A stretch of DNA of 62,924 nt, counting the filler, from Hausera hauseri (lineage: Eukaryota): NCBI GenBank assembly GCA_046269625.1. It is 11 parts of 11 records of this genome, joined end to end, with 100 filler letters (N's around TTAATTAATTAA, not from the genome) between each part and the next. Parts side by side here need not be neighbours in the genome. Positions count along the whole stretch, not along the records: positions 58,963 to 62,924 come from JBJURY010854966.1; 10 more parts are not named here. One strand, 5' to 3'. Shown one piece after another: positions 57,535 through 62,924 of the stretch (its first letter is position 1; each line of letters starts with the position of its first letter). The notes beneath the pieces are model-generated. The model saw only the letters and a program-made list of their open reading frames with translations. It did no database searches and was not told where the DNA came from. The translations under genes and the position numbers were made by a program.

Positions 57535-59071
57535 CCCCACTTCTGGTTTATTTATCAATCGTTTAGCGTATTCTCTTATTAGGAGCTTGGGAACTGCACT
57601 GTATGCGGTGTTTTCACTGGCTAGCTTAGTAAAAGTTGGAATTAATTTCTTTAATTTGTCTTCACTCATGTCTATTTTCAGTACACTGTCCAATTCTTTT
57701 TCTGCTAACGTAGGATCCAGTAACATTTTTACGTCAAATTTCTTTTTCAGGGTATTAATAGGTGACTCATAGATTTGTATAGGAGTTCTTTGACTCTGTT
57801 CGTTTAAACCTGGGCGGTATTTATCCCACTCGGTATAATTATCTGCGTCAGGTAGCTCGTAGTTCATTAATGCCGCGTGTCCTACTTGGACTTGTTTGTG
57901 TAGTTCTTTTATTTGCGGTTACAATATTTTCATTACGGATACTCTAAATCCGTCTCCATTTTCGCAGGCTTGTTGTATCAATGTTATTATTCAGCACATT
58001 TCTTGTGGTTGTATCCAGGCTTTCTCTTAATAGCCGGTTATTTCTGCGATTCTGTCTTTTTACCATCTCTGTACGAATTCCGTTTTGTCGTTCATTTCCG
58101 ATTCCGTAAGGAAATACTTGTTCTTGTCAACTTCTGTTTCTCTCAGTAATTCGTTTAGCTCGCGTTGTCTTTTCTCTGAGCGTAATTGGGTTCCTTTTAC
58201 CAGACGTATTCGATTTGTTAGTCGTTTGGCTACTACTTCGTAAATTTCTGCCATTTCTGTTAATAATAGGATTAATTTGTGCATTTGATTTAATACTTCA
58301 GCATCCGGATCTATTGCATCCATTAGCCTGCCTATGAACTGGGCTTCGTCGGCAGTCAACTGAAGATCCTTCCTAATTTTCGTTAGTTCGGCGTGGCAAT
58401 GTAAGTCGAAGCATGGTGTCCATTCTGCTGGATTCTGTAAGTATTGTAGTGTTTGTACCAGGGCAATCCGGTGATCTTTACATACTTGCAATGTTTCTAT
58501 TTCCTTTGCTGAGATTTTCTTTAATGGTTTCTGCATTAGGTTCTGTATCCCTCCCCTGCGGATGTTGGCTAAACTTTGCTGAAGATTACTTAGTTTGTTT
58601 CTTTTTCTGTAGAACTCCTTTTCTTCTATCATACTATATATCGCTGTTAATGTTGTTTGCTTTTGATCCCTGTTCATAAATTCAAGTTCTCAGAATGATT
58701 CGAATTTAATTCGCAATTTTGCTTCATCTTCCATCGTACCGATATCTAGTAGCATTTCATCCAATTGTTGTTTTATTATAGGCTCAACCACGGCGAATTC
58801 TCTCAGTCTTTCGCTTATTATCCCTGCTATGGAAGGTAACAAGTCTATCCACGTCTTTAGTTNNNNNNNNNNNNNNNNNNNNNNNNNNNNNNNNNNNNNN
58901 NNNNNNTTAATTAATTAANNNNNNNNNNNNNNNNNNNNNNNNNNNNNNNNNNNNNNNNNNNNGTTGTATAGAATGTATAAAATGTTGGTTGGATGTGTGT
59001 GAAAAATAATGATTGAATGATCCCTGGCAGGGTTCGGAAGACTGGGAAAACGGGAATAATTATGGCTGAAA

Positions 59072-59115
59072 GCCGTTAGACGGTCTTTACAAAACTATTG
59101 TTTTATAATTGCATG
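59072..59115 (+). other. Flatworm (planarian-type) spliced-leader exon sequence, 44 nt, fused to PMCA 5' UTR
   Basis: GCCGTTAGACGGTCTTTACAAAACTATTGTTTTATAATTGCATG; shares its first 16 and last 12 nt with the copy at 49055-49012. Confidence 0.9.
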
Positions 59116-59185
59116 AAATCGCATTTTGAATAAACATTTCCATTAGATTTTTCCGAATTGAAAAACTAAAAACAACTAAATCGAA

Positions 59186-60930
59186 ATGGGCCAAGAAAAT
59201 TTTGATGTAACGACAAAGGAATTGACGGAACTGATGATGCTGCGGCAGCACGAAGCCATAGCAGAAATCAAAGACAAATATGGATATGTTAACGAAATCT
59301 GTCGTAGGCTTAAAACATCAGCAAAATCAGGGTTAATTGATAATGATGAAATAATCAACCATCGACGAGATATTTTCGGCTCGAATATTATTCCACCGAA
59401 ACCGCCAAAGTCATTTTTTATGCTCATGTGGGAAGCTTTACAGGATCTAACATTGATTGTTTTAATGGTTGCGGCTGTTGTTTCATTGGGATTGGCACTC
59501 TATTCTAAGTACAGCGGCTCAAGTCATGGCGACGAAACTGAAGGAGATGCGAGCTGGATAGAGGGTGTTGCTATTCTCGGTGCTGTAATTGTTGTCGTCT
59601 TAGTGACAGCATTTAATGTTTGGCAGAAAGAACGTCAGTTCAGAGGCTTACAGGATCAGATTGAGGGTAATCACAAAATATCAGTGATACGGGACGGCAA
59701 GTCAAAAGAAATCGTGGTTGGAGATATTGTTGTTGGTGACATTTGTCAAGTGAAATATGGTGACCTATTGCCTGCGGACGGAATTATTATTCAAAGTAAT
59801 GATATCAAAGGCGACGAAAGCTCTTTAACCGGTGAAGCAGATCATGTTAAAAAGGGTGTCGACATTGATCCGATGCTTTGTCGGGTGCTCATGTAATGGA
59901 AGGTTCTGCCAAAATGGTTGTAACTGCTGTTGGTCTTAACTCACAAGCTGGGATTACTTTTTCATTACTCGGGGCAGCAGATGAGAAACAAGATAGGTCT
60001 TCGCCTGAGAAAACTAACCCTCAGGAAAATACCCAAAATTCAAAAACAGGAAAAACTGGAGATGACCTTGAATTGATTAAGTTAACGGAAGACGTTGAAC
60101 AATGTTCAAATCACAAATCTAATAATTATTCTGGTGGTGACGTGGACAAAGGAGATGCCGAACAGGCTAAGGCTTAACAGACGAAGAAAAAAAAACGTGT
60201 TGGCAAGAAAAAGGGTTCTGTATTGCAATCAAAGCTTAATAAGTTAGCGGGAACTATCGGCCAAGTTGGAACAATTGTTGCTGCACTTACAGTTTGTATT
60301 TTGGTAGTGAAATTTTGTTTACAAACATACCACCTGGATAATAAGCCTTGGAGTATGGATCATTTGAAGACAATGATTAGTTTTCTCATTATTGGAATCG
60401 TGGTGCTTGTTGTGGCTGTTCCAGAAGGTTTTCCATTAGCAGTTACAATTTCATTAGCATATTCAGTTAAAAAGATGATGAAAGATAATAACCTTGTGCG
60501 TCATTTAGATGCTTGTGAAACTATGGGTAATGCGACTGCTATTTGTTCCGATAAAATTGGTACTCTAACTACTAATCGCATGACTGCTGTTCAAGTTTTT
60601 TTTTTCAACGGCATTCATTACCGCGAGAATTTGCCATGTTTTGAGGAATTGTCAGTGAACACTTCGGACATTCTGATAAAGAATATTTCCATTAACAGCA
60701 GTTACACATCACGCTTGATGGCATCACATAAGCCTCAAGATTTGCCCACTCAAATTGCTAATAAAACAGAATGTGCACTTCTCGGTTTAATTAATGGTAC
60801 ATTAAGCGCAGTTATGAAGAGATCAGATCAAAATGGACAGAAGATAAGCTGCTTAAAGTTTATACGTTCAACTCCTCCAGAAAATCAATGAGTACAATTA
60901 TCGAGGATGAAGGGAAACTAATTCTTTTAA
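59186..60930 (+). pseudogene. ATP2B: Processed pseudogene of plasma-membrane Ca2+-ATPase (PMCA, P2B), 3' truncated
   Basis: [79 protein letters not shown] (DKTGT mutated). Intronless, with frameshifts at ~59880, ~60610 and ~60800 and a stop at 60175. Confidence 0.95.
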
Positions 60931-61323
60931 CGAATGATAATTTATGAATTAATTGGAGAAATCAGAGGAATCTATATCATTCCTAAGAAGAAACGGTTTA
61001 AAAATCAAATTCTTGTTTGTCATCATTGCTGACGGAGATCATTAATGAGCAAACATGATAATAACTAATCAAACAAAATGGCTGCTAAGCAAGATTCCAG
61101 TTCGTCAAGAAGTCATGTGGTTTTTTCAATTGTCTTTAGCAATGTAAAAAATTCCTTTGTTGGATTTGAATTTAATGGTTTTTTATTCATAATGAATTTG
61201 AATTATTAATTCACGTGAAAAGACCAAAATAGTCAAAACTAGTCAAAATTTAAATTTGTAAATTGGATATAGAATTGAAAATTGAATTGATATTTCAAAA
61301 ATCAAAAATTCAAAAGTTGTATT

Positions 61324-62924
61324 ATGTTTGTCCCAGAAGTCCTGATACGGACAAGTTGGACAACTTTAAATTTTGAAATAACTGATGGAAAATTTCGCAA
61401 AAATTGTATTCAAATTGGTGCAGAGAGCGTAAGAGACTACGCATATAAAATCTCTCTTGGAAAATTGCTGGAAAACAAGAGAAAAAGACCTCAGAAACAA
61501 AGACAGTCAAAAATGTCCAAAACGTCAGATTTACATCAACAAAAATTACATTATCTTTATCCAGCTGATACCATTCAGAAGAGTAATGAATTATTACTTG
61601 TTCCTAGCATTCTGCTATTTGTTAAATTGAAAGACGAATTTATCCAACTTATCCGCGTTATATTTGGTCAGCAAATTGTTGTAGTATCAGTATGGAATAA
61701 TTGTCATCATTTACATCGGCTTGATATTGGTGAAAGGATTTCCGAGAGGGTTCGAGAATATTTCGGAAAGGTATGGTTAATTCCAGAAAGTTTGGAATTA
61801 GAGTGCGCTGATATCGGAAACCTACAAAAGGACGTTGGATGGAGCCGCACAAGTAAATGGAATGTTTTTGATTTAATTATCAAATGGACTAAACTTAATT
61901 TGTCTATTAGACGATCTTCCATTTTCAAAATAATACTCCACTTTCGACTTAATTCATTATTGGAGGAAGACGTCGAGCTACAATTGTGTTGGTCAACAGA
62001 AAAGTTCGAGAAGATGATTAGCGGAGACGAACCTCCATTCTCAGGGAGGGAACGCTCATACAATGAAAAATATTTGAACGATTCACGAACGTTGGAGAAA
62101 TTTAAGTGTTGGGTAAATAGTACCATTGTTAGTTGTTCTCTTCTTTTTGGTTTGATGGACTCTGTCAGGGGTCGTATAGAATGCATGAGTGATTGTATGA
62201 TTGGTAAAATATGTGAGACTGTTATGAGATACAGATTTAAAGGTGGAGAAAGTCCCCCGGAGATGAGCACTCCGTTAAAAAGGGCTAAGAATGAATGTGA
62301 AATTAATGTAAATGTATTTTTATATCGTTATATATTGTCTAAGGGGGGTTTGGGATATAAAGGGGGTTATAAATTTGAACCTAGAGAATTTGAATCAAAG
62401 TGTCAGTTGAGGATTATGGAACTCAATAGTAAAAAATTGAGCATAGAAAACGCTGGATTGTGCAAGAAGGAGGGGGTGGATGACCCGCGATATAGTGGAA
62501 AGAGTAGGAATACTTGCTGGGGAATTGGGTGTAACTGGAAAGATAAAACATTATTAGGGTTAGGAGATCGGAAACAGGTCAAAGAGGGAACGAGACATAG
62601 GAAATCTACGTTGAGGTCGAGAGCATTATGGACACGACGAAAGAAAGGATTAATAAATTTTTATAAGATAATAAATGAAAGCAGAGGGGTACATAGGTTG
62701 CGTCCCAGGGAGATTGGGTCCAGTAGAAAACGACAGAAAAAGGGAAGTGAAGTGAAAACCAGAGTGCCCAGTAATTTACCACTTAAAAGTTGTATAAATT
62801 CAACAAATGGTAGCAGAGCGTGGTTGCTGCTCTGCACCCTGATCTGCAGGCAGCGGCCGCGGCTCTTTGTCTTGTCGAGGATTCCTTCCGTCCTCCTTGT
62901 GTTCGGCTCTTCCTCTGTAAATGG
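61324..62924 (+). CDS. Open-ended ORF (>530 codons, absent from ORF track) with divergent BTB-end/BACK region and a short Gag-like motif
   Basis: Manual translation shows no stop from 61291 to the window end. VFDLIIKWTKLNLSIRRSSIFKIILHFRLNSL resembles the BACK consensus; QIGAESVRDYA resembles the Gag QxxxESVxDY motif. Confidence 0.5.
   Translation, partial: MFVPEVLIRTSWTTLNFEITDGKFRKNCIQIGAESVRDYAYKISLGKLLENKRKRPQKQRQSKMSKTSDLHQQKLHYLYPADTIQKSNELLLVPSILLFVKLKDEFIQLIRVIFGQQIVVVSVWNNCHHLHRLDIGERISERVREYFGKVWLIPESLELECADIGNLQKDVGWSRTSKWNVFDLIIKWTKLNLSIRRSSIFKIILHFRLNSLLEEDVELQLCWSTEKFEKMISGDEPPFSGRERSYNEKYLNDSRTLEKFKCWVNSTIVSCSLLFGLMDSVRGRIECMSDCMIGKICETVMRYRFKGGESPPEMSTPLKRAKNECEINVNVFLYRYILSKGGLGYKGGYKFEPREFESKCQLRIMELNSKKLSIENAGLCKKEGVDDPRYSGKSRNTCWGIGCNWKDKTLLGLGDRKQVKEGTRHRKSTLRSRALWTRRKKGLINFYKIINESRGVHRLRPREIGSSRKRQKKGSEVKTRVPSNLPLKSCINSTNGSRAWLLLCTLICRQRPRLFVLSRIPSVLLVFGSSSVN

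Follow-up and report, generated by a model that had tools for sequence, protein, structure and literature searches.

How did a complete spliced-leader (SL)-like sequence of 44 nt come to stand in the DNA of Hausera hauseri (assembly GCA_046269625.1), directly in front of a broken PMCA coding sequence? The locus lies on record JBJURY010854966.1, the last of the 11 parts that were joined end to end to form the window, i.e. the whole stretch of DNA analysed here (62,924 nt, filler included). We examined positions 58963-62924 (3962 nt, without N, + strand), a piece of which parts are matched by four public runs (X1-X4), whose contigs were aligned to it. The locus is probably a retrocopy, in other words a processed pseudogene, of a trans-spliced PMCA mRNA. 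We infer the RNA intermediate from the leader itself: it is SL-like, encoded in DNA, abuts an untranslated region (UTR) and lacks a GT donor, which argues that the copy passed through mRNA. A first-pass annotation of this DNA had already described a 44-nt SL-like sequence 70 nt upstream of an intronless, lesioned PMCA, and the sequence itself, Pfam and tblastn confirm that description.

A leader-like 44-mer before a decayed PMCA copy

The identity of the coding sequence is clear. Successive open stretches match the Pfam families Cation_ATPase_N (3e-16) and E1-E2_ATPase, and 60178-60888 matches the solved PMCA2 (9gsd, 3e-68). In a library of 1.84 billion proteins, the closest representative is a PMCA of 1216 amino acids (aa), at 61% identity. 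When this protein was used in tblastn, its residues 11-236 fell on 59201-59878, residues 228-548 on 59851-60798 and residues 552-586 on 60810-60914, three blocks in three different frames. The three blocks come in order and without an inserted block, so that the copy follows the first ~590 of the ~1200 PMCA residues collinearly. PMCA remnants past 60927 had been suspected by eye, and tblastn with the 1216-aa PMCA gave none. The ORF (open reading frame) fragments that other animals have for the same region break off near residues ~48 and ~108, positions that look like exon borders, and the reading in the window runs unbroken through both positions. Collinearity and uninterrupted read-through thus lend indirect support to the view that the copy is intronless. 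The nearest named relatives found by word search are PMCAs of cestodes, a monogenean and trematodes (56-64% identity), and this identity suggests a host flatworm that is not near any sequenced parasite. Taken with the GC content of 26-39%, it is consistent with a free-living flatworm.

The piece, in which GC content ranges from 26 to 39%, is laid out as follows; the ATG at 59186, which opens the PMCA reading, was located by reading the sequence.

58963-59071, + strand: 5' flank, 109 nt; a high-copy repeat usual just upstream of the leader, present as a minority variant
59072-59115, + strand: spliced leader-like 44-mer, GCCGTTAGACGGTC...TTGCATG, read from the sequence; ends in ATG
59116-59185, + strand: 5' UTR of the copied mRNA, 70 nt, A/T-rich, read from the sequence
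59186-59876, + strand: PMCA reading, first frame, residues 1 to ~230 (Pfam, tblastn); ends at frameshift 1
59878-60177, + strand: PMCA reading, second frame (tblastn); closes at an in-frame TAA in a variable loop
60178-60809, + strand: PMCA reading continued, with M4 and the phosphorylation site (match to PMCA2 9gsd); frameshift 2 at its end
60810-60927, + strand: last PMCA-homologous stretch, third frame (tblastn, translation); stops at about residue 590 of 1200
60928-61305, + strand: single-copy AT-rich spacer, 378 nt, 26% GC (X1 depths 14.3 and 10.9)
61306-62924, + strand: dispersed repeat with a 544-codon open frame (X1 depth; contigs of X2 and X4 start matching at 61306)

The PMCA reading is damaged along its length. 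Frameshift 1 falls in a T run (59874-59876), frameshift 2 (60805-60810) lies outside any homopolymer, and the in-frame TAA occupies 60175-60177. DKIGT replaces the phosphorylation motif DKTGT (60550-60564, ACT to ATT), PEGFP replaces PEGLP (60421-60435) and IANKTEC replaces VGNKTEC (60754-60774). When aligned with 17 full-length PMCAs, the copy differs at 3 of the ~52 reliably aligned invariant columns, the phosphorylation motif included; the misaligned low-complexity tail of the second piece was left out of this count. Four real flatworm PMCA fragments show 0, 0, 0 and 2 deviations at invariant columns. With two frameshifts, the TAA, DKIGT, PEGFP and residues 1 to ~590 only, the locus does not encode a functional PMCA, which is a P2B-type ATPase.

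The 44-mer behaves as a sequence module of its own. A unitig of X4 corresponds exactly to 59072-59115, with 0 differences, and an exact 44-nt unitig in a graph built at k=31 means that the sequence branches at both edges of the 44-mer. It exceeds the single-copy depth by a factor of thousands. Contigs, dozens in all, diverge before 59067/59072 and behind 59115/59116, and two contigs of X2 have unrelated sequence immediately in front of 59072. In X1, 30 contigs part behind 59116 and 7 behind 59119, their mutual agreement being low (0.42); several dozen distinct sequences follow the leader there, leader-gene variants among them. The ~30-40 X1 contigs that split right after the leader would fit several junctions of SL to other sequence.

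The form of the 44-mer is also leader-like. Its first 14-16 nt are presumably like those of Schmidtea leaders. A GCCGU/ACGGU hairpin is predicted at its 5' end, although the entire 44-mer is no more stably folded than shuffled sequence (z -0.86). All reported SLs of parasitic flatworms end in ATG (PMC12582326), as the 44-mer does. Directly after 59115 stands AAATCG, not a GT donor, and Rfam over the piece gave no SL RNA, so the locus does not have the marks of an SL RNA gene. A literature search for the 44-mer sequence gave nothing relevant, and a 24-mer from the leader had 0 matches in metagenome contigs.

A second version of the locus in run X1

X1 contains 0.86 of the sampled words from the piece. 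Its contigs add up to 1.2 Gb, the longest records reaching 78 kb, and, judged by this assembly volume and record length, it is apparently genomic DNA rather than RNA. The locus is present in it as a single 2057-nt contig (59091-61145) at depth 14.3, the single-copy level being ~14, and this contig overlaps the next one (61116-61335, depth 10.9). It spans the last 25 nt of the leader, the UTR junction, the full PMCA reading, the break at 60927 and 218 nt of the spacer.

The X1 contig differs from the window at five places only, by 3 substitutions and 2 one-base insertions. The T>C at 59548 is synonymous. An extra T behind 59876 abolishes frameshift 1, and G>A at 59887 restores the conserved SGTHVMEG. 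At 59957, C>T changes GITF to the conserved GIIF, and an extra T at the same place makes a frameshift private to X1. The TAA, frameshift 2, DKIGT, PEGFP and the 3' break are absent from the listed differences. The frameshifts reported in the first-pass annotation therefore fare differently: the second is common to both versions, whereas the first is absent from X1, which has another at 59957. At 59887 and at the C>T of 59957, two of the five differing sites, X1 keeps the conserved PMCA residue and the window does not.

Because the older lesions are common to the two versions and others are found in one version only, they point to a neutrally drifting pseudogene and not to read errors in a cDNA contig; they look like two haplotypes or strains of one locus decaying neutrally. 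The earlier assignment as a processed pseudogene, as opposed to a cDNA contig with errors, holds in the light of X1, which shares lesions with the window and continues into non-coding DNA at single-copy depth. Given the parent gene, the differences between X1 and the window could help to polarise and date the decay.

Formation of the copy and of its two ends

The simplest and most probable scenario is a retrocopy. The pre-mRNA of a flatworm PMCA (a P2B-type Ca2+-ATPase) would have been trans-spliced to the 44-nt leader 70 nt before the ATG, and cis-spliced. Reverse transcription of the mature mRNA would then have reached its capped 5' end, and the resulting cDNA would have become fixed in the genome. 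This would leave an intron-free copy made up of the leader, the 70-nt UTR and ~590 codons from the start of the coding sequence, and neutral decay would follow. The 3' half may have been lost during cDNA synthesis or joining, for example by an internal jump of the reverse transcriptase (RT), or by a later rearrangement beside the neighbouring repeat.

Several points weigh against a retrocopy of a trans-spliced PMCA mRNA. The parent PMCA of the species was not found: word searches with pieces of 237 and 105 aa gave flatworm relatives at 56-64% identity or conserved exons of other animals. Introns of the parent and a trans-splice acceptor at the position that corresponds to 59116 are accordingly presumptive. 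The leader role of the 44-mer is read from its form, its copy number and a presumed likeness to planarian leaders, and no RNA run was found. X1 possibly comes from the same specimen as the window, in which case it would be independent of the assembler but perhaps not of the animal. A poly(A) tail is missing, since no A run reaches 10 nt and none outside the coding sequence is longer than 6. No target-site duplication was seen either, 59030-59075 and 60850-61400 having no common word of at least 8 nt. Finally, a plain retrocopy should not bring along the usual upstream neighbour of the leader, because an mRNA cannot carry that flank.

Mammalian processed pseudogenes made by long interspersed nuclear elements (LINEs) are 3'-complete, carry poly(A) and target-site duplications, and are often 5'-truncated. 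The PMCA copy resembles them in its decay, its apparent lack of introns and its probable origin from a spliced mRNA; unlike them, it is 5'-complete and 3'-truncated and has neither of the two marks. Neither AATAAA nor ATTAAA occurs in 60800-61400, and an internal-repeat search of the piece found nothing that connects the two flanks. The first-pass annotation had the coding sequence break off at ~60930 without poly(A); the lack of poly(A) stands, and the end of the homology is corrected to ~60927.

At the 5' end, the 109 nt before the leader (58963-59071) had been regarded as other sequence. This has to be revised, as the leader usually has this flank, a high-copy repeat, before it. Its summed depth in X1 is ~88,000, against ~14 for single-copy sequence, and it is also present in X2-X4. 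The sequence from 59067 onward is shared by 38 X1 contigs, and the consensus that precedes it, …AATAATCATGGTTCACCGAGAGT, resembles that of the window, …AATAATTATGGC, an 11-nt indel aside; at 59060, 59061 and 59066, alternative letters occur in 38-46 contigs. The flank of the window is thus a minority variant, at roughly 80-240 times the single-copy depth. It is sequence normally found upstream of the leader, and most simply the 5' flank of a leader-RNA gene unit. The X1 unitig begins only at 59091, so it cannot decide whether the flank truly adjoins the locus. Either the assembler joined the two through the 44-nt repeat, or a cDNA recombined with a leader-RNA gene unit.

In the second case the locus would still be a real retrocopy, with a 5' junction made by homology: the cDNA, with the leader as its end, would have entered a leader-RNA gene unit, by recombination or by landing there, and replaced the leader intron. 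This would explain why the flank is what commonly stands before the leader, in one specific minority variant, and why the leader is complete to its first base; target copies number in the thousands, as judged from depth ratios. It would also account for 5' completeness without elements bearing long terminal repeats (LTRs), and for the missing target-site duplication. Such junctions have parallels. Ty1 cDNA-mediated recombination in yeast joins cDNA to the genome by homology, and the SL-gene-specific retrotransposons SLACS, CZAR, CRE and NeSL-1 use leader-RNA genes as integration targets; recombination of the Ty1 type or targeting of SL genes would account for the leader-gene flank at 58963-59071. 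However, no element like SLACS, CZAR, CRE or NeSL-1 was found at the locus, and the leader is intact, not split by an insertion. Moreover, with a unitig that starts at 59091, X1 leaves the link between flank and locus to the window assembly, an assembler can mis-thread a 44-nt repeat, and the 3' side (60928-61305) is single-copy, unlike the leader-gene unit. We consider a junction by homology possible, although rather unlikely.

If the flank is truly joined to the locus, cDNAs that share the terminal 44 nt might be captured by homologous recombination at the thousands of leader-RNA gene units, an extension that we regard as unlikely. Retrocopies that are 5'-complete and lack poly(A) would then land, and decay, in leader-gene arrays, and this would be a route of retroposition apart from the LINE and LTR routes, needing neither a LINE endonuclease nor an LTR integrase.

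The first-pass annotation had favoured a template switch of the LTR type, in which the RT in a virus-like particle would have left the element RNA for the PMCA mRNA and later returned to it, giving a partial copy without poly(A) and embedded in element sequence. The copy is indeed partial, 3'-truncated and without poly(A) or target-site duplication, as listed for LTR-mediated chimeric retrocopies (PMC5131818), and both ends of the contig are repeats. This route, however, is recognised by LTR-retrotransposon sequence at the flanks and by microsimilarity where the template switches (Tan et al. 2016, PMC5131818), and no LTR-retrotransposon sequence was recognised on either side of the PMCA copy. 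No LTR was seen by eye, nor any TG...CA end, primer-binding site or polypurine tract at 59071 or 62802, and the downstream ORF has no match to RT, integrase, protease or gag in Pfam and no relatives by word search or in Atlas. In addition, 378 nt of single-copy spacer separate the copy from the repeat, and it would be a coincidence for the template switch to fall precisely on the cap-proximal first base of the leader. An LTR-type origin is therefore very unlikely, and the template switch proposed earlier is not borne out.

It could also be imagined that a mobile repeat, whose 3' end comprises the 44-mer and its flank, landed 70 nt before a PMCA pseudogene already in place; the leader would then not derive from the PMCA mRNA. 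Agreement among X1 contigs is 0.71 before the leader against 0.42 after it, as at the 3' end of a dispersed element. Yet in X2 and X4 the 44-mer occurs after unrelated sequence and as an isolated unitig, thus as a module of its own, and its terminal ATG and 5' hairpin are features of flatworm leaders. A short UTR between leader and ATG is the outcome of trans-splicing, and an intronless decayed coding sequence requires an RNA intermediate regardless. We find this explanation most improbable. Least credible of all is an artefact, be it a contig derived from cDNA or from a transcript, or an assembly chimera, with read errors for frameshifts: the contig is short with both ends in high-copy repeats, and frameshift 1 lies in a T run where X1 has one T more, but the TAA, frameshift 2, DKIGT, PEGFP and the 60927 break are not among the X1 differences, the X1 contig goes 218 nt into single-copy non-coding DNA and overlaps the next contig, and the X1 version has its own frameshift at 59957.

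Related systems and the downstream repeat

A retrocopy of a trans-spliced mRNA has precedents elsewhere. Relict-spliced-leader retrogenes of dinoflagellates were reportedly described by Slamovits and Keeling in 2008. DNA-encoded leader relics are a standard mark of retrogenes in these organisms (PMC6050394, PMC5585692). As there, the leader of the PMCA locus stands in DNA directly 5' of the gene copy, where it marks a mature trans-spliced mRNA and a 5'-complete cDNA. The dinoflagellate copies are very numerous, mostly functional, expressed and re-spliced, and often carry stacked leader relics; unlike them, the PMCA locus is one dead, 3'-truncated animal copy with a full 44-nt leader.

In flatworms, loci that share the SL through integrated reverse transcripts of trans-spliced RNAs are an acknowledged class (Calvelo et al. 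2025, PMC12582326): across 24 species of parasitic flatworms, 597 loci with partial leaders adjoin LTR or LINE elements (PMC12582326). Since they adjoin such elements, the transcripts concerned are retrotransposon transcripts. The PMCA locus is from the same phylum and likewise has a leader without a donor site; the loci of Calvelo et al. (PMC12582326) also lack the Sm motif. The present case differs from theirs in that a host housekeeping gene carries the leader in full, and in that the organism, judged by its best PMCA identity of 56-64%, is outside their 24 species. The PMCA locus thus belongs to a known class and is neither a LINE-type nor a demonstrated LTR-type pseudogene; SL-tagged relics are well known in dinoflagellates and hardly described for flatworm host genes.

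A leader in DNA is an unambiguous tag of passage through mature mRNA and tells us that cDNA synthesis ran as far as the capped 5' end. In dinoflagellates, work on retrogene turnover began with this tag, whereas such flatworm loci have so far been filtered as noise from sets of SL-RNA genes. With a clean host-gene case in which two haplotypes decay independently, the tag becomes usable to census and date flatworm retrocopies.

The dispersed repeat from 61306 onward bounds the retrocopy and is not part of it. Depths of 180-2000 mark it as a repeat, and overall its depth in X1 is a mosaic, from ~12 to 2000 against 14 for single-copy sequence. The 544-codon frame (61291-62922, first ATG at 61324) runs off the contig and holds 0 stops, compared with 35 and 53 in the other + frames. 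A Pfam scan that covered this frame gave no match to RT, integrase, protease or gag, and thus no retroelement domain. A word search of 5.8 billion proteins found no relative for a 470-aa part of it, and an AlphaFold2 model of the 533-aa frame from the first ATG was uninformative as to fold (mean pLDDT 32). A BACK domain was considered and set aside, both scores being below trust (Pfam E 0.05, Atlas 0.77). The frame may belong to an unclassified mobile element or to a gene of an expanded family.

The end of the piece is different again. The stretch 62802-62924 is GC-rich, has a summed X1 depth of ~36,000 and is identical in the runs of two other organisms (X3, X4); TATAAAT stands 13 nt upstream of it, and PstI and NotI sites lie inside it. 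Rfam on the 3' end of the piece gave no family for 62802-62924, and a 28-mer of this 3' repeat had 0 matches in metagenome contigs. A vector origin of the end (62687-62924) was rejected, as there was no match among plasmids. With an abundance close to that of the leader flank, 62802-62924 might be part of the same high-copy unit. In one X1 contig, at depth 252, 62257 is followed directly by 62801, with 543 nt omitted; this junction is a deletion derivative of the repeat and ties its ORF-bearing part to the very high-copy end.

In the spacer, a mir-135-like hairpin (61160-61242) reached 17.7 bits (E 4.9) against a gathering score of 59.2, in sequence of 23% GC, and was taken as chance. The X3 and X4 samples seem to include a second organism: of the piece they have the high-copy parts only, and the GC-rich PMCA of another animal in them matches only the conserved 35 nt at 60858-60892 (VYTFNS.RKSMS).

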